Assembly (NCBI GenBank): GCA_037447605.1 | Contig: CM074807.1 | Coordinates: forward strand, 2,862,327-2,926,326 | Reading direction: 5' to 3' | Source of the DNA: Zygnema circumcarinatum SAG 698-1b | Lineage: Eukaryota > Plantae > Zygnematophyceae | DNA length: 64,000 nt | Shown: positions 28,094 through 54,817 of the stretch, piece by piece | Position numbering within the stretch: position 1 is the stretch's first letter | Layout of the letters: every line of letters begins with the position of its first letter | Made by a program: the position numbers and the translations under genes | Notes under the pieces: generated by a model | Seen by the model: the letters and a program-made list of their open reading frames with translations, nothing else | What the model was told of the DNA's origin: nothing | The model's database searches: none

Positions 28094-29008
28094 AGGGATG
28101 GACGGCAGGGGCTTAGGGGCTTATGCTTGCGAGGCTTTCCTTAATATTGATAATGCCAGAATTGGTTTTTAAAAGCACTTGCTTGCGCACATTTTTTGCC
28201 CTATTCTTTTATGTTGTGTTAAACCAATATGAACTGCAACATTTTTCTTATGTTCGAAGTCGTGTCATGACGTTTCAGACCATGGGACTTTTAAGGTTCG
28301 TGCCTTTGCGTGGGCTTTCATACCTCCGGTTTTTGTCTTACAAAGCGCTATCGTGGGGTTGCTGCACAAGTGGAGGGCCCCTTCCTTACAGATGCAAACC
28401 AAAAAGCAGCGCTTGGTTTTATGCACTCAATTGGGCCTAAGGATTCGGACAGGCAACCATGGGGAAAAAGACTGAACTGACTGCGGTACACAGCGCAGGC
28501 CTGTATAACCCCTCGCACAGACTAAAGCATCCTGATGCCAACACAAGTGTGGAAAGTGGCCGGAGAAGAAGGGAGTCAGATTGAGAAACCATGACGTCGA
28601 AAGGCAATTTCTTGTTTTTAAATAAAGACAAAGCTTTTTTAACAATAAAATTTGAACCAAAAGCTTCTACGCTACAGTTGGAACTGCTGTACTGTATCCA
28701 AAATTTATTCTAAAAGGAAAGGACGACTCCAGCAGCAGCGTAAACCAAAACTCAGTCACACTATGCCTGTGTCCTACTGAACGAGCCGCGTGTGGACAAT
28801 AACCTAAGCCAAAAAAAGACACCTTTTGCACCTTTACTTATTGCTGGCTGCAACCTACACAAGAAATGCAGAACTTTAAGTAAACCTATGTAAGAACTTC
28901 GAAAACCCTAACCAGTGAGGAGGATCTCCAGCTTTTGTAAGCTGTTACAGCACGGCCTGTCCTCCAGTAAAAACACGTCTGTTTCCAAGTGCTCCAAGCA
29001 AAGCGGTT

Positions 29009-30291
29009 CTATGCAGCTGCGCCGTTCGCCGTTGCTCCTTTGAGCAGGACCTCCTCCATGATGTCTTTGCCAGTGAGGAAGGGCACACCGTTGGCCTCCG
29101 CCCACTCTTTAGCCCGAAGCGGCGGCAGCGCCCCGTCGTCCTCCCCCTCGTTGCAGAGCATCACGCAGCCCACCTGCACGACATGCGCCTCTCTCCCTTC
29201 ACATACGGACAACTCATCTTCCCAGAACCCGACGGGGTTCATCCAGAATAAGACCATCCTACGTCGAATGGTGACAGCCTAGTGAAATTAATTCTAGGAA
29301 GCACGAGGCTACTAGCAAACCTTTCTTAATTGGACACAGGAAGCTTGTCAAGTTCACTGCTTGATGTCCAGGTTCATTTTCTCAGCTACAAATGTCCTCC
29401 TTTAAAGATTGCCATCAATGCCAAGCAAGTTGCGAAATGCAGGATTCGAACTCGGGACAGCAGGATCTGGGAGCAACACCTCTCAACAGCACCCTACAAA
29501 GGGGCACTATCCCACAGACATCGGCTTCATGGTTTACGTTCTGTGTTTCCCCCACTCGCTCCCCTGCATGCAAAACCCTCGACCTTTCTGACAGTGACTC
29601 CCCACTAACTCCGCCAAATGCACTTCCCATCCACTTTCATCGACAGCCTCCAGCCTCTGACGCCTATTCCCAAAGCCCTCAACGCTGCAGAACGGGCTCT
29701 CACCATAATGGGAGTGATTCCCGCATAGCGCGCCAGCGCAACCGAGAGCTCCGTGTGGCCGCGCCGCGCAGCCAGCCCGTCCTTGTTCTCTATGCACAGG
29801 AAGACATGGCCGGGGCAGTGAAACTCTTCTCCCAGCAGCTCCGCCGCCCGCTCCACCGAGGCGGGGGGATCGCAGCGGCTGACCTCCTCCCAGAGCTCCG
29901 CGAAGCGGCGGCAGGTCACGCTCCGCTGGTCGTCAGGCGCGCCCGTGCGCGTCTCGCGGTGGTCAAGGCTCAGCCCCACAGAGCACGCGCCCTGGCAGGC
30001 GCCCTCGGCCTTCTTCTGGAGGCCCCCCAGAGAGGGGAAGGCGGCGGCGGCCCCGCGCAGGACCTCCCCCGCAAAGGGTAGCCCGAAGGCGCGGGCGACG
30101 CCGCTGGCAGTGGCGATGTAGAGCTCGCCGCCGGCCTGCGTGCGGAGGAGGCGGAGGCGGCGCGCGGAGAGGAAGGCGGCGGGGAAGAAGAGGTCCGTCT
30201 CCGCCTCGCGCGACTCGTCGTCGAGGATGGCCACGCACTCCCCAAGCCGCAGCCGCGCCACGGCCGCCGCCATGTCTGGGGAGGGCGCCAT
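29009..30291 (-). CDS. ribB: Stand-alone 3,4-dihydroxy-2-butanone-4-phosphate synthase-like protein (RibB fold, archaeal-type), about 250 aa, 2 exons
   Basis: Exon 1 is 30291-29704 and exon 2 is 29173-29009 (GT-AG). Motifs: [60 protein letters not shown]. Confidence 0.85.
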
Positions 30292-30561
30292 GGCGGACAG
30301 GCGGGAGAGGGAGAGGGAGAGGGAGGGTAAGAGGGAGAGAGGGAAGTGGGAAGGAGGGCCTCTGCGGCCGCCGCCAGCACTGCGCTGTACTGTCCGTACG
30401 GTGGGAGATTGCGCGCCACGTGGCACGCTATCCGCTATCTTAGGGACATTACCGTACACCATTACGATATCGTATTGTATCGGGCGTGGTCAATATCGGG
30501 CGGTCGCGGCGGGCCGTGGAAGGCGAGGGGAGCGGGTTGGTCGATACGATATCGTCAACAT

Positions 30562-35200: not shown

Positions 35201-38200
35201 TCTCCAATATGGATCATACTTCAGAAGCAGAGAACTATCGCTCGTAACGTGTGACAGATAAAAGCACAAAGCACCATTCCAGACAACCTACCTAAAAGAT
35301 AACATGAAGTGCAGACACATTAAGGACAGGCTGCACTATAAAAGCCATAGCAAACCCGGCTATGGCCCCATATAAGCAGGTTAGAAAACTTTGAACTTGA
35401 GAGAACGAACCACCTACTCCTGTCACGGTTCATGCAATGTATACCTCCCACTCCTGCAATTAGTAATTTGTACTCACCAAATTAACATGTGCTGTGTTGG
35501 TGACCTCCTTGGCCCGTGTGGCAAACGAGAGTGTGTTTCGAGTCTGGTCTACATGCGTTCGAGCAGGGCTAAGGGTACAGATAATGGCGGTTCGGCCGTT
35601 TCCTCCCAAAGAGTGGGAGAGGATTCGGGTCAACTTGGAATCTCGGTATGGAATATGGCCAGAGCGAGTTTTGTTTCCGCCACTGCATGCAGACACCGAC
35701 ACAACTCCACTGCATTTAAAACCCCTCTCCTTAGCGAGCACGGCCTCTTCTCCTACTCAGAAGAGATAAGGACTTCACCTGAGTTTGCGGATGACTGTGC
35801 TCAGCGTCAACAAGCTGCGGTTAATGTAAGCTCCCTCCTTTAGACGGGTTCCCTCTGCTTGCGTTTGCGAAGCTCGCTCTGAGCCAGCAAGGTCCACAAA
35901 ATTCTGCTCCCACCCTCACCCTAGTCAAGTGTCATAATATTGTTGCACCAATAGTGCAAGTCGACACGTTTTCGCATACTCAGGCCCACTATTTGTGGCA
36001 AGGAAATCAACAGGGAGTGCCGTAGCTTAACAAGAGCAGCAACAACGATGCGAGTACAAAGTGAAAGAGCATCTTTTGAGTTATAACTTTTTCAAACGGG
36101 CAACAACAAATGCTTCCAACGGAGAGGAGGTTGAAAGCTTGATTAGCAGCGAGCACAACTCACGAAACAGTCTCCATGCTTGCCAGATTCTGACAAATGC
36201 CAAAAGCAAAGGAAGGAGGAAACCATACCAGAGTAGCTGTGAGGACCTGCCCACTGAAGCCCTCTAGAGACGACTTCAGACCCGTTGATGGCAAGGGGCA
36301 GCTTTCTACTGTCTGCAGGGCCACATTCATTTCCTTGATCAAAACTAGAATTCCATCATGCATGCATTGCTGTAGGACACTTGTAACCACTCTCCGACCG
36401 CACGCAGAATCTCGCTTGCAGTAGGAGAATGATAGTCAGCTCCCAATGCAACCTGGTTTCCTCGACTTCACTGCATATAGCATTTGTGGGCTTCAGGCCA
36501 GCTTTCAACTCTGGTATAGCTAGCACCACTACCTGTTAAGTCTGTAAAAGTATACGTGATATCCTAGGCTGATGCGTCACAACTAGCAAGAACTGACTTG
36601 TTGTCACATCTCCATTTTCTCCAAGCCATTTTGTTTGGTTTTGTCACAGTGGCTCACTCTCTAAGCTATCCCGCTCCTTTGTGCACATCTGACCATTCGC
36701 ATTCATCAGCACTAGGTCCCTCGAGATTTATAACTATTATCATCCGTAGTCCAAATGTATGACACGGGATACTGCTTCACGTTTCGTACTCCGTGCACTA
36801 ACTGATAGCATTTGTAACACTCACATGCAACATGTAAGGAACAGCTCCCATAATCTACAGAACAGTCGAGACATGCTTGGAAGCAAAAGAACTCTAGACT
36901 TAATAAATTGGCCTCCCCCTCATATCCAGTGCATGCAGAGCAATGACATGATATAGAAAGGATTGGAGAGAGTGCAGAAAGGTGAAGGAACACACCAGTC
37001 GCACAATTTGATGCGACCGCGAGCTGAACTCGTTCAGAGTGGTCTCCCCCACCTGCCGCTGGGCTGCCAAGCCCACCATCATTCAATTCAGTGGATCAGC
37101 CACACTTGTCAATGGCATAGTTGTACGGTTGAAGGGAAGCCATGCCCAGGAACTGCAATTGTGCGCATCAGTTTTTGGTTCATTTGAAGAGGAGTGGAGC
37201 TGAAAGTACACTCGCAATCGGCCAGGATTTGGCGCAGATGCATGGACGAACGAACCACCTCCTCAGTGAGTTTTTCAACGACAGTCCCCTTCTGCCAATG
37301 CTCCCAAATGTGATACACCAGTGAGATAAAGCTTCCTGAAAGTTGCTGCAAAGCCATCTTCTTTATTCAGCAAAGCCGGATTTTGGAAAAAGCTGCCTCG
37401 GTTCGTGAAGGAGTGTTCGTAATGAGGGAGTATCGGGGACTGCAACGGGAGTCATTGAGGAATAAAAAAGGGTGTCCCCGCAATTCAGGCAACCAGTGGG
37501 ATGCTGACAGTGTGCAGGAAAAAGGCAACTAGTAATGCTTACATAGGGATCGTCCAGGAGGCGAAGGGCGCCGCTCTCCATATTCAGTAAATCCCGCACA
37601 ACTTCATTGTAAATCTCCAAAGCTGAGACGCGAATCATGTACTCGCGTTGAGGAGTCTGCCATTACCGCAAAAACATATGAGACATGCAAGGCTGCACGA
37701 AGCCACAAGTCTAGCTTCTCTAGACCAAGCTATGTGAGATTATTCAGTCTCTCGGAAAAAAAGGGATATGATCTTAGAACCAGGACTCCAACGGCATGAA
37801 GAACAAAAGGAACGAAGTACGTCGTCGGCAAGCAGTTACGCCCTTCGAGACACTGCAGGGGACTGTTACACTACTCTTGGATATGACGATTCATGCCAGT
37901 GACTACATGGAAAAAATAAAGGTGTTTTAAATTCTGAGAAGATACACGAAAAACTTCAAAGGAGGTACGTGTTTGCATAAACAACAGCAAACAGATGGAA
38001 AACATTGCCCTGTGGGGAAGGCCCCCTACTCAAAAGAGAGTATGAGCTTAGTCCAATTAAAGATAAGGATTGCAGGTAAGCTCACTATTGCTGTGGGAAA
38101 GAGGAATCACTAAAGGTTTTGAGGGAAGTGTTTGGTCTATCCAAGCTGTGAACAAAAGAAAGTGAGCCAATCCAAACCCATGAAAATAGCCGGAATAACT

Positions 38201-51358: not shown

Positions 51359-52299
51359 TATGGTGAGGCATATGTAGCAGGTTACCTTACGGGCTCTTCC
51401 CATATATAAGGGATGTACCGCCATTCATTTTTCGAGTACAATTAACTGTACCTTTCCATTTTTTTTGTTACTTGATTCTGTCGCAGCTCATCTTGGCACC
51501 CTTCGTGCTCCTATGCGCGTGAATGCCTCTTCTTTTGTACCTTTTGCCTTGCCCTTCCGGATTTATTGATGCAATTTGTTATGCTGAAATGCCTTTTCTT
51601 TCTCGCAGAGGATTTCAAATCCTTCGCCTCTTCCTTTTGGTAGCTGCTGCGTGTCAAAGCTAGTCACTGAAATGTTGGCACGTGGGAGATCAGGATCTAT
51701 GCTGAACAAAGCCACGGACGTGAGACGACGCCGTCAAACGGCACACATCGAAATGTGAATGTTGGGCACATTCGCGCACACGTTGAAATAAGGGAAAAAG
51801 GGTCGCACCTTATTTAAAAATAGTGGAGGACGGTGTACAAGACAAAGTAGGAGAGCGAAAGTCACTCGCCTCAACCCTCAAGACTGCCTCTACATTTCCT
51901 TGAGCTACTTGATAGTTCATCACAAGATCAACGCCAGGTGGATCTTGCCTTCGTGTAGACCCATACAAATGGAACTAGTCCTTATGACATTATCGTGCCT
52001 TGAAAAAGACACTTTTGAGGCGTTCACTCAACTAAACGATAATAACTGAGTTTTAAGTCTGACCATTTCGCAAATTGCTCACACCGCAACGGGCGTTCTG
52101 CAATTCAAAAAATCCGTTTGAAGTCTCTAACAGACAAAACCACTGAGATCAAGATGATCTCGAACAAGGGACCGAACAAAAGCATGCTTATTAGACACCC
52201 CAACTCTCCCACGTTTCCCATGCCACACACCACACGCTACTGCCCACCCATTCGTGGACCCTTATTTCCCCTCTCGTCAGCCAGCCACCTTAATCTGAC

Positions 52300-52563
52300 C
52301 CCCCACCCCCCCACCCCTCCCCTCCTCCCACTCCCTCCTCCCTCCCCTCCTCCCTCCCTCCCTCCCTCCCTCCCTCCCTCCTCTTTCTCCCTTCCTCCTC
52401 CCCACATCACCCCTCCTCCCCTCCCCCTCCCCCCAACCCCTCTCCCTCCCTCCCCTCCTCCTCCCTCCCTCCCCTCCTCCCTCCCCTCCTCCTTCCTCTC
52501 CCTCCCCTCCTCCTCTCCTTCCCCTCCCCCACCCTCCTTCTCCTCCTGCCCCCTCCCCCTCCC
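52300..52563 (+). repeat. Polypyrimidine (C/T) low-complexity tract, G-rich on the sense strand of the minus-strand gene's 3' UTR
   Basis: Directly visible; begins immediately after the TAG at 52564-52566. Confidence 0.9.
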
Positions 52564-53872
52564 CTATTGGGTCGCCACTGGCAGTGGCAGAGTGCGTCCC
52601 CCAAAGGCCGAGTAGCGGCAGTCGGGCGCGAGCGCGTCCGAGGAGCGGTAGTCCTCCGCGGCGCCGTCCAGGAAGCCCTCCCACCCCTCGCCGTCCGCCG
52701 CGACCACGCGCCGCCTCGCGCGGGCCAGCGCTTGGAACCGCGCGTTGCGGCCCTCGCGGCCCTCGCGGTAGGTCTGCCCTAACACTCCGTGAACATCGGG
52801 CGTGGCCTGCACACAGGACAAAGGGCAAAAGGTACATAATACTAAGATGAAATCACCAAAACGCAAAGAAAAACAGAATGAAGATAGAAAGAAAGAGGGG
52901 GACAAAGCGGGGGCCTTAACGCTTTCAAAAGAAGCCGACCTGGTGGGCACGTTGGACATGAGAAGCAGCAGCCATTCATCCATTCATTCATCACTCATTC
53001 ACCTTCAGCCAGTTGAACCCAGCGTTGATGTGGACCATGGCGTCACCGGGCGGCTGCAGCGATCTGAGCGCCATGCGGAGGTCCACGCTCAGATCCACCA
53101 AGCCGTCGATGCGCACATTGTACCGATCCGTGTCGTACGCTCCTTTCTTGCTCGCAGTGGCGGTGAAGTTGAGAGTGAGCCCTCCGGGAAGACTCCTCTC
53201 CTCCCCCGCCTGCATGCGCCTCAGCTTCCTCCCATCGACTATGGCAAACCCTAAAAACCCGGCACCGCGGCCCCTCTTCCTCCCCTCCCTCGCCGCGAGC
53301 CGGAGCGAGTGCTGCTCGCCGCCGTCCGCCATCCACAGAATGCCGAGCTCGCGGATCCATGTGCGCAGCACCGTTCCGTTGATCTTGACGGCGGCGTTGG
53401 TCCGTGTGCGGTAGCCGGCCATGCGCATGTTGACATGCAGCCGGCGGTCCGTGACTAGACAGAAGCTCGCGTTGGGGGCGCCGCTGAAGTCGAATTTCAT
53501 TCCCTGCGCGCCGAGGAAGTGCGGGTCGCCGGTCACGTTACCGCACTTGCTGCCCACGCTCGAGCGGTAGGTGCCGCACGCGGGGCCGGTGGGGCCGGGG
53601 TAGAGAAAGCAGTACCCGCCCGAGGTCCTGCACAATAGAAGAGGGTGGTGGTCAAGGGAGTAATATGAGAGAGAGAGAGAGCGAGAGAGAGAAAGAGAAA
53701 GAGAGAGAGAGAAAGAGAGAGAGAGGGAGAGAGGGGGAGAGGGGGAGAGGGGGAGAGGGGGAGAGAGGGAGAGAGGGAGAGAGGGAGAGAGGGAGAGAGG
53801 GAGAGAGAGGAGAGAGGGAGAGAGGAGAGAGGGAGAGAGGGAGAGAGGGAGAGAGGGAGAGAGGGAGAGAGG

Positions 53873-53907
<35 letters not shown>

Positions 53908-54459
53908 AGGGGAGGGGGGAAGCGTGAAGGAGATGGGGAGGAATTATTGCAAGTCCGTTCGAAGGAGTAGATTGAAAATTTAAGCGCTAGAGGGGGGTGA
54001 AGGCCTCAGGCGGGCGGGCGGGCGGCGACCTGTGGACCCATTGCCAGATGCTGCAGGAGGTGCGGTTGGAGCAGCGCTGGCAGCAGGCCATGGCGGAGGG
54101 CTGAGGCGTCACGTTGATCCGCACTCCCCCCGAGGAGATCGTGCCCTCAAAGTTGCAGTCGTCCAGAACGCAGCCGGGCGGAAGACGGGCCACCTGCAAG
54201 GGAAGAGGGAGGAAGGCGGAGGCAGGATTAGGGTTCTGGGATGTAAGAAAAGCATGGAGGCGGCAGGGGGGGGGATCGAGGCGAGGCGGATTACGGCGTA
54301 GTTGCCGACGAGGCCGCCGGAGCGGCACGAGCGGCAGCCATGGCTGGGGAGGTAGTCGGGGCACTGCGCGTTCACGGAGAGGGGAGAAATGGCCGCCATG
54401 GATGCCATGGCGAGCAGGAGGAGAGCGGGGGAGACGCGCCGGGACGAAGGTGGGGCCAT
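52564..54459 (-). CDS. Secreted protein: signal peptide, Cys-rich PAN/apple domain and root-cap/LEA-related (VWD-like) domain, about 398 aa
   Basis: Exons 54459-54295, 54193-54030, 53627-53003 and 52806-52564 join in frame (1197 nt). Features: hydrophobic leader ALLLLAMASMAA, PAN-like CCQRCSNRTSCSIWQW...YCFL, and GDPHFLGAQGMKFDFSG, FCLVTD, WIRELG, VHGVLGQTY, DYRSSDALAPDCRYS. Confidence 0.85.
53665..53915 (+). repeat. (GA)/(GAGAGG) polypurine microsatellite inside an intron
   Basis: Directly visible. Confidence 0.95.
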
Positions 54460-54817
54460 GGCGGCGAGAGAGGGGAGGCGGGAGGGATTGAGGGAAAAGA
54501 GTGAGGGAGGGCCACAAAATAGCGTCAAAACGGAGGCGGGAGGGCCCGACCGTACACAATGTCGGTGCGTTCGGACAAGACGAAAGGTGTCAGCGAATTT
54601 CTGGGTTTTTCGAAGAGGACAGGGTCACAGGCTCACTGGGGCCGCGGGTCGCGGCTAGGGGTGGAGGCGCGGTCCCGGCCTGTTCGTGCCCCGGGGCACG
54701 TGGCCCACGTGGCCCGTGGCCTCCCCCCTCCTGGAAGGGGGGCATGCCCGGGGCTTGTGCCCCTGTTCGTGCCCGTGACATGACCACATAGAACAGGTAA
54801 AGTCGGATCAATTACAG

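Follow-up and report, generated by a model that had tools for sequence, protein, structure and literature searches.

Does a gene for an archaeal-type RibB homologue in the zygnematophyte alga Zygnema circumcarinatum SAG 698-1b still encode a synthase of DHBP (3,4-dihydroxy-2-butanone 4-phosphate) when residues of its active site have changed, and how did it come to lie in a plant-lineage genome? The gene is found on the minus strand of a 64,000-nucleotide (nt) stretch of contig CM074807.1, here called the window, and positions are counted from the first letter of that stretch. It had been described from its letters alone (the original prediction) as a horizontally acquired, intron-bearing RibB-fold gene that may have a different substrate or function. 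By sequence comparison we show that it is an orthologue of a Viridiplantae-wide family, which extends from prasinophytes to lycophytes. On the alignments, the altered residues are synapomorphies of this clade and not peculiar to this genome. We give a probability of roughly 0.5 to the reading that the proteins are active enzymes whose chemistry or product would be unlike that of canonical DHBP synthase (DHBPS).

The gene has two exons (30291..29704 and 29173..29009), and its spliced product is 250 amino acids (aa) long, as the predicted monofunctional protein of about 250 aa required. PF00926 is the only domain found in the 250-aa protein, which contains no GTP cyclohydrolase II (GCHII) domain. 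The features of the gene are as follows.

30292..30364 (upstream limit approximate), minus strand: 5′ untranslated region (UTR), a CT-rich low-complexity leader seen in RNA contigs, with no ATG from about 30364 to 30291
29704..30291, minus strand: exon 1, codons 1–196, from ATG 30291 to ...ITPIM, with the PF00926 match and an RNA contig depth of 175–463; it encodes the acidic loop R28-E29-A-E31-T-D33, G54-G55-E56-L-Y58, the archaeal-type insertion, loop 2 (C99-Q-G-A-C103), T116-G-A-P, Q122-R123, H158, P-G-H162, C166 and R176-x-G-H179-T-E181
30124..30126, minus strand: Glu56 codon GAG (Leu53 in Methanocaldococcus jannaschii), candidate relocated acid/base residue
29983..29997, minus strand: codons of C99-Q100-G101-A102-C103, the rebuilt loop 2 (M. 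jannaschii Tyr95 to Cys and Ser99 to Cys)
29174..29703, minus strand: intron of 530 nt, GT..AG (GTGAGA...CAG), phase 0, between Met196 and Val197, with its joint seen in RNA in four runs
29009..29173, minus strand: exon 2, codons 197–250 and TAG, encoding V197-G-C199-V200-M-L and FLTGKDI; RNA contig depth 184–572
29162..29164, minus strand: Val200 codon GTG, equivalent to M. jannaschii Glu185 and V. cholerae Glu175, at the start of loop 3
28654..29008, minus strand: 3′ UTR, end approximate, from contigs over exon 2

Active-site residues of a green-lineage RibB family

Exon 1 alone matches the Pfam family PF00926 (DHBP_synthase) at 108 bits (cut-off 26.4, E = 5.5e-31). Its best solved relative is the M. 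jannaschii DHBPS (1PVW/1PVY, E = 3e-23), while exon 2 matches the C-terminal part of the archaeal NCBIfam model NF004437 (E = 0.009). The best match and the presence of both archaeal-type insertions bear out the prediction that the protein is archaeal in type and is not the DHBPS half of a plant RIBA. The motifs quoted in that prediction (63 residues, not shown, and DDQR) are likewise all present. The AlphaFold2 (AF2) model of a liverwort orthologue, P0012, which is 60% identical to the window protein (alignment A1), has a predicted local distance difference test (pLDDT) score of 88.5. In a Foldseek search with this model the top match was 1PVY/1PVW, with a target-normalised template-modelling (TM) score of 0.93 and a root-mean-square deviation of 2.0 Å, and 47 DHBPS chains matched at E ≤ 1e-3.

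Family membership does not extend to the curated RibB equivalogs, which are defined by a score above a cut-off. Exon 1 scores 110.6 bits with TIGR00506 and 103 bits with NF004437, below both cut-offs, and the full-length green orthologues reach 133–145 bits with TIGR00506 (cut-off 177.45) and 116–128 with NF004437 (cut-off 262), so that they too lie outside. With TIGR00506, three archaeal relatives score 182–218 bits and a fourth, at 176.8, lies slightly under 177.45.

Residue equivalences were taken from HMMER alignments of the window protein to 1PVW. D24, R28, E29, E31 and D33 correspond to M. jannaschii Asp21, Arg25, Glu26, Glu28 and Asp30; E56, Y58, C99, T116 and Q122 to Leu53, Cys55, Tyr95, Thr112 and Asp118; H158, H162, C166, R176 and H179 to Arg143, His147, Leu151, Arg161 and His164; and T180, E181, G198, C199 and V200 to Thr165, Glu166, Ile183, Cys184 and Glu185. 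The three altered residues singled out earlier (at Cys55, Asp118 and Glu185) are thus recovered as Tyr58, Gln122 and Val200. The M. jannaschii enzyme (1PVW/1PVY/1SNN; NF004437, TIGR00506) and the window protein share their fold, length class and both archaeal-specific insertions, as well as the acidic loop RExExD, PGH, RxGHTE and the Thr of TG. They differ by Glu185Val, Cys55Tyr, Leu53Glu, Tyr95Cys, Phe101Val, Asn106Asp and Arg143His, by Ala-Pro in place of Ile114-Thr115 and by Gln in place of Asp118 (Glu in the green clade); the window gene is, moreover, eukaryotic, intron-bearing and below both equivalog cut-offs.

These differences are shared by a large group of green proteins. A word-indexed search returned 79 relatives, of which the first 30 or so (46–65% identity) are green-lineage or metagenome/transcriptome sequences with the same signature; archaeal relatives rank next, at no more than 45% identity to the window protein. 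The green members include Ceratodon, Physcomitrium, Calypogeia, Selaginella, Mesotaenium, Closterium, Chromochloris, Scenedesmus, Tetraselmis, Prasinocladus and a member of the Pedinophyceae by name, and Pycnococcus/Pseudoscourfieldia and Pyramimonas from cluster look-ups. The family is therefore spread over prasinophytes, chlorophytes, zygnematophytes, a liverwort, mosses and the lycophyte Selaginella, with no seed-plant member among the family members found. A hidden Markov model (HMM) search of 1.84 billion representatives gave 4570 family members, and among the best 150 of these the green signature was confined to green-clade proteins and one divergent sequence (P0081).

In a tree of 135 rows (IQ-TREE, LG+C20 with posterior mean site frequencies (PMSF), quick search, bacterial outgroup), the window protein and the other 24 green rows group in a single clade, whose Shimodaira–Hasegawa-like approximate likelihood ratio test (SH-aLRT) support is 100. 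The stem of this clade is 1.45 substitutions per site, while the terminal branches inside it are mostly 0.1–0.6. Streptophytes and chlorophytes fall into largely separate subgroups, and the window protein branches at the base of the green clade without a resolved position. A lineage-specific capture is contradicted by this tree, which puts the protein in a widespread, vertically inherited eukaryotic clade, the outcome that the original prediction had itself named as fatal to it.

Residues were compared between 24 green rows and 131 archaeal plus 8 bacterial-type rows, the full counts being 25, 136 and 8. At 22 positions the green clade has a fixed residue that is unlike the archaeal majority. 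Position 200 is Val in 25/25 green rows, while all 136 archaeal and all 8 bacterial-type rows have Glu; the C-V-M motif, earlier flagged as unusual, is indeed found in 0/144 of the non-green sequences sampled. Position 56 is Glu in 25/25 green rows and Leu in 127/136 archaeal rows, and the signature residue Tyr58 is invariant in the green clade. At the other positions the green state is Cys99 versus Tyr (99%), Cys103 versus Ser, Val105 versus Phe (99–100%, M. jannaschii Phe101), Asp110 versus Asn (98% of archaea, M. jannaschii Asn106), Ala118-Pro119 versus Ile-Thr/Ser, and His158 versus Arg (89%). With the active-site loops defined as in the V. cholerae enzyme (PMC5228156), the changes fall in loop 2 (98–106), which is rebuilt around CQGxC, loop 3 (200, 204), loop 4 (118–119) and loop 5 (158). 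Loop 2 has the lowest confidence of the P0012 model (pLDDT 64–68), as expected if the rebuilt loop were a mobile loop or lid.

The window protein matches the green signature (Glu56, Tyr58, CQGxC, TGAP, FHxPGH and GCVM) in full, and departs from the green consensus only at A98 (Met), Q122 (Glu) and V163 (Ile). Gln122 is also present in the Pedinophyceae sequence; this position is Glu in 92% of green rows and Asp in 95% of archaea, and Thr116 of TG is kept. The V. cholerae counterparts of this Thr and of the Asp/Glu that lies four to six residues further on are Thr108 and Asp114, the Thr being reported as strictly conserved (PMC5228156).

The residues predicted to hold metal and substrate have been retained. 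The metal ligands Glu29 and His179 (V. cholerae Glu39/His154; PMC9305975) are invariant in green and archaeal rows, and so are the phosphate contacts (Arg28, Arg176, Thr180) and hydroxyl contacts (Asp33, His162). The contact residues were assigned by motif equivalence, M. jannaschii Arg25, Asp30, His147, Arg161 and Thr165 being matched to R34, D39, H133, R147 and T151 of the Z. tritici DHBPS, in which R34, E35, D39, H133, R147, H150 and T151 contact the ligand (PMC12268802). T180 was read from the RRGHTE motif, where Thr is invariant in alignments A2 and A3.

Retention of these residues bears on the idea that the green protein is a catalytically dead RibB-fold pseudoenzyme, which would bind metal and a sugar phosphate and serve as a sensor or pair with a second protein. 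Such a protein would have lost a residue that is invariant elsewhere, would score below the equivalog cut-off and would be redundant with RIBA, all of which fits. However, ligand-binding residues are usually lost in pseudoenzymes, yet every anchor is invariant here from prasinophytes to lycophytes. Furthermore, the active-site loops hold the newly fixed Glu56, Cys99, Cys103 and His158, a pattern suggestive of a catalytic site that has been rebuilt, and a search of the green members for extra domains or fusions found none. We regard a pseudoenzyme as improbable.

Splicing, base composition and archaeal ancestry

RNA contigs from four of seven public runs of one organism, covering three studies, were compared with window positions 28600–30500. 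In 4/4 runs a splice joint omits exactly 530 nt (CT..AC on the plus strand, equivalent to GT..AG on the minus strand) at a depth of 289–572, while intron-retaining contigs have a depth of 15–31. Because the joint skips exactly 530 nt, the runs are at least in part RNA, and this nuclear gene is expressed with the splicing that the model gives; the intronised gene that had been predicted is thus seen in RNA from three studies. The lower ends of the contigs lie at about 28654–28670 in three of the four runs, and the contig of run X6 reaches the edge of the compared stretch at 28600.

At the 5′ side, the contigs align up to 30294 and then carry 38–70 unaligned letters within a CT-rich repeat (30295–30339). 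No RNA contig of the four runs continues into unlike sequence, which argues against an upstream exon. The CT-rich sequence directly 5′ of the start codon consists of ctccctctc repeats (30295–30360, minus strand). Position 30291 is the first ATG inside the span of the contigs. No N-terminal extension precedes the DHBPS domain, whose start lies near residue 7, in keeping with the predicted lack of a transit peptide. An in-frame ATG at 30462 was rejected as the start, as it lies outside the main contigs and is reached by a single low-depth contig (6.2 versus 212) in one run. The exon-1 frame is open upstream to this ATG (minus strand; window 30340–30500), which would add 57 residues and may reflect a minor longer transcript or background.

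The intron is also found in Closterium, at the identical codon boundary (PVM|VGC) and with the same GTGAGA donor. The Scenedesmus gene has introns at other places and the Physcomitrium gene is intronless. Truncated open reading frame (ORF) calls in several other taxa end in PIMV, as expected for read-through into the same intron. The deposited model of the Closterium sp. NIES-54 protein P0017 (L087, 1501–2847) reads 11 codons (VRPPTHGVGRK) past ...ITPVM into the intron; an alternative model, which uses the canonical GTGAGA donor found at the corresponding site and the CAG directly before VGCVML as acceptor, fits all orthologues.

Exon 1 has a GC content of 72.8% (89% at third codon positions), compared with 50.4% for the whole window. 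The GC-richness of exon 1 reported in the original prediction is therefore real, and only 0.28% of 588-nt windows are as GC-rich, but it is not unique and provides no evidence of recent transfer: a second such block is present at 52.1–54.8 kb, and shows that coding blocks rich in GC are a native feature of this genome. In this block (52100–54800) the 588-nt windows reach 74% GC, and the ORFs include one of the proline-rich PPPSPP type (52118–52615, plus strand) and one with a GDPHFxGxxGxxFxFxG motif (52991–53635, minus strand). The GC-rich exon 1 was dropped as a sign of foreign origin in view of the spliced intron, its sharing with Closterium and the second GC-rich block. Elsewhere in the window, an ORF fragment with a kinesin motor signature (SKLTRIL...LGGN...; 35460–35741, minus strand) is probably an exon of a kinesin gene.

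A recent lineage-specific transfer, or contaminating archaeal DNA, would account for the base composition of exon 1 and for the archaeal-type sequence features, but can be excluded. The spliceosomal GT..AG intron is removed in RNA and stands at a position common to Closterium, the protein is closer to its green orthologues (46–65%) than to any archaeon (at most 45%), green monophyly has full SH-aLRT support, and the window holds a second GC-rich block. Of the predicted horizontal acquisition, the archaeal-type affinity stands, while a restriction to this lineage does not, given the 25-row green clade.

The archaeal side of the family was then described from a scan of one genome per prokaryotic species with a Thermoplasmatota-only alignment. 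It returned 80 loci, nearly all labelled Thermoplasmatota, Thermoplasmata or Methanomassiliicoccales. In the free tree the green clade is nested in a Thermoplasmatota-dominated group with SH-aLRT 96. On the other side, a tree in which all archaeal sequences form one clade with the green sequences outside is not rejected by an approximately unbiased (AU) test (p = 0.53), which weighs against the nesting. The placement is not settled by likelihood because of the long green stem and the long bacterial outgroup and, with the alternative still standing after the AU test, nesting rests on the SH-aLRT value together with a triad of characters.

This triad, Phe/Tyr58 with Cys166 and Gly198, is complete in 50/136 archaeal rows, and exactly two of the three residues occur together in 0 rows. 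The 38 triad rows with a taxon label are Thermoplasmatota except for two odd metagenome-assembled genome (MAG) labels and one unclassified archaeon MAG. The triad is complete in 24/25 green rows, while the bacterial-type rows have neither the triad nor the insertions. Archaeal rows with the linked states (for example L005–L079, P0031–P0033 and P0082–P0087) have Phe at Cys55, Cys at Leu151 and Gly at Ile183. Judged by its residues, the Thermoplasmatota subfamily that the triad marks evidently functions with no 'catalytic' cysteine. Replacement of Cys55 by Tyr was accordingly ruled out as an inactivating change in the green proteins: Phe occupies the site in the 50/136 archaeal rows, and because these include Thermoplasmatota riboflavin-operon genes, the change is less telling. 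One locus, L016 (JAJPHT010000029.1, 232 kb, labelled as a Proteobacteria MAG), has a Thermoplasmatota-type ribB with the F-C-G triad near the contig end, which is either mis-binning or an archaeon-to-bacterium transfer.

The Thermoplasmatota ribB genes (for example P0032, L005 and L008) have the highest prokaryotic identity to the window protein (45%), share its triad and insertion lengths, and are the sister or nesting group of the green clade in the free tree. They differ in keeping Glu185, Leu53, Tyr95 and Phe101, and in lying in ribB/ribL-like/6,7-dimethyl-8-ribityllumazine (DMRL)-synthase clusters; P0032, the one of these three that was scored, passes TIGR00506 at 181.8 bits. On three separate contigs the nearest archaeal genes are clustered with a CTP-transferase-like gene (FAD synthetase type) and one or two DMRL-synthase-family genes, and the donor-type gene was therefore a riboflavin gene.

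The Physcomitrella patens ribB is the sole family with an archaeal donor (Euryarchaeotes) in Table 1 of Yue et al. 2012 (PMC3493653), where it is filed under riboflavin biosynthesis with no Arabidopsis homologue. This moss protein (P0006) is an orthologue of the window protein, 59% identical and with the same clade and signature residues, differing in that the moss gene has no intron and the window gene has one. The distribution is consistent with a single ancient transfer from an archaeon into the green lineage, after which the gene was inherited vertically and gained introns; from the sequences compared, the transfer, if any, would lie at or before the base of Viridiplantae.

Other variants were seen in the wider family. 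P0142, P0152, P0168, P0181 and P0193 form a second divergent RibB-like subfamily (SH-aLRT 99, stem 1.1), with G-A/G-P-L for GGLIC and TGCS-x-x-ET for TGITDxDR but with the loop-3 Glu kept, and may be a further functional offshoot of the RibB fold. An additional region of roughly 180–235 residues is fused to the archaeal-type RibB domain, at the C-terminus in P0090 (409 aa) and at the N-terminus in P0101 (453 aa) and P0126 (455 aa).

Possible function of the green proteins

An active enzyme with altered chemistry is favoured by several observations taken together. After a burst of change on the stem, the sequence stays tightly conserved between prasinophytes and lycophytes; the binding residues are kept; new Glu, Cys and His residues are fixed in active-site loops; the family coexists with RIBA; and the streptophyte members have no transit peptide. 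The protein would still bind Mg2+ and a pentulose phosphate or other sugar phosphate, and its chemistry or product would be other than that of canonical DHBP synthase. As they have no transit peptide, the streptophyte proteins would act in the cytosol, beside a plastid RIBA that makes DHBP for riboflavin. Physcomitrella and Selaginella also carry canonical RIBA, and in Arabidopsis all three RIBA isoforms are imported into the chloroplast (PMC3509567).

Plant RIBA has a PF00926 fold in its N-terminal half and uses the same substrate, but it is of the bacterial type, having no archaeal insertions and, judging from the bacterial-type rows, a Glu at loop 3. It is also a fusion with GCHII and carries a transit peptide (PMC3509567), whereas the window protein has neither.

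The strongest competitor is that the protein remains an ordinary DHBP synthase and supplies the four-carbon precursor of riboflavin by a second route, independent of RIBA. The catalytic Glu of loop 3 (now Val200) would have moved to the strand with residue 58, as Glu56, and the remaining green changes would be neutral or compensatory. Consistent with this, Thr116 is kept together with every contact to metal, phosphate and hydroxyls, and L53E and E185V are each fixed in 25/25 green rows. Cys55 is dispensable, and a Glu at the Asp118 position is found in the S. pneumoniae enzyme (PMC5228156). The algal members also appear organelle-targeted: chlorophyte and prasinophyte proteins have N-terminal extensions of 60–110 aa without domains, which look like organelle targeting peptides.

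On the other hand, Glu185 is intact in 144/144 other sequences from archaea and bacteria, and Tyr95 (99%) and Phe101 (99–100%) are replaced along with it. The green proteins lie 30–45 bits under the ribB equivalog cut-off, and a long stem precedes the tight conservation. The family coexists with canonical RIBA, and Arabidopsis has lost it with nothing in its place. Streptophyte members lack a transit peptide, unlike the chloroplast-imported RIBA of Arabidopsis, and the window protein has no carboxylate at position 122. An ordinary DHBP synthase seems to us less likely than altered chemistry.

Several points nevertheless weigh against altered chemistry. The functional part of the argument is built on residue patterns. 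M. jannaschii Glu185 is presumably the catalytic acid/base, an assumption that we draw from work on the M. jannaschii and M. grisea enzymes, and its importance is argued here from its conservation in the 144 sequences. Glu56, newly invariant, might do the work of Glu185 instead, which would leave a DHBP synthase. The linked 58/166/198 triad suggests that the strands with residues 58 and 198 pack together, and its covariation likewise suggests that the Glu56/Tyr58 strand is close to the Val200 strand. In the P0012 model the strand limits are 58–61 and 195–200, compatible with an antiparallel register that places 56 opposite 200, a proximity that we infer; residue 56 could then face residue 200. 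Finally, the N-terminal extensions would place the algal members where riboflavin is made, although they fit either reading.

Within the reading of altered chemistry, a more specific proposal can be made, which we advance tentatively and at less than even odds. The green protein would be a neofunctionalised, Mg2+-dependent RibB that binds ribulose 5-phosphate (Ru5P) or a related sugar phosphate and halts at, or diverts, an intermediate of the RibB reaction. Here it is the loss of Glu185, with the Cys-x3-Cys loop and Glu56/Tyr58 in its stead, that would halt or divert the intermediate. That the product of the fold can change is shown by the E. coli RibB G108S mutant, which converts Ru5P to DXP, the 5-phosphate of 1-deoxy-D-xylulose (PMC8227265), by a change that adjoins the segment equivalent to TG-A-P. 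By analogy, a 1-deoxy-diketo phosphate or a 1-deoxy-pentulose phosphate could be what the green proteins release, for example, which would make them a naturally occurring parallel to the G108S route.

The likeness has clear bounds. The mutant (the nDXP enzyme; PDB 7TYE) has the RibB fold, and in it a loop-4 TG-x-x change redirects Ru5P (PMC8227265); in the green clade the two residues after that Gly are changed. G108S, however, was made by engineering and carries one mutation in a bacterial enzyme that keeps Glu174. DXP production by the green proteins would be an analogy only.

Implications for the RibB family

The existence of the gene and its archaeal ancestry are already known (Yue et al. 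2012, PMC3493653). The parts of that paper available to us contain no discussion of active-site changes, and full-text searches on the family turned up no account of clade-wide active-site remodelling, nor of the green-algal breadth with a shared streptophyte intron. The clade-wide remodelling therefore appears to be undescribed.

Databases and the 2012 survey of horizontal gene transfer file the family under riboflavin biosynthesis. Four of the five active-site loops have been re-lined while the metal and phosphate anchors were kept, which would mean either migration of a catalytic residue or a new reaction. Either outcome bears on the debated RibB mechanism, and on the role of a second, apparently cytosolic RibB in early-diverging plants and algae. 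If the green proteins are indeed neofunctionalised, they would carry out an unrecognised sugar-phosphate reaction that prasinophytes through lycophytes have conserved and seed plants have lost.

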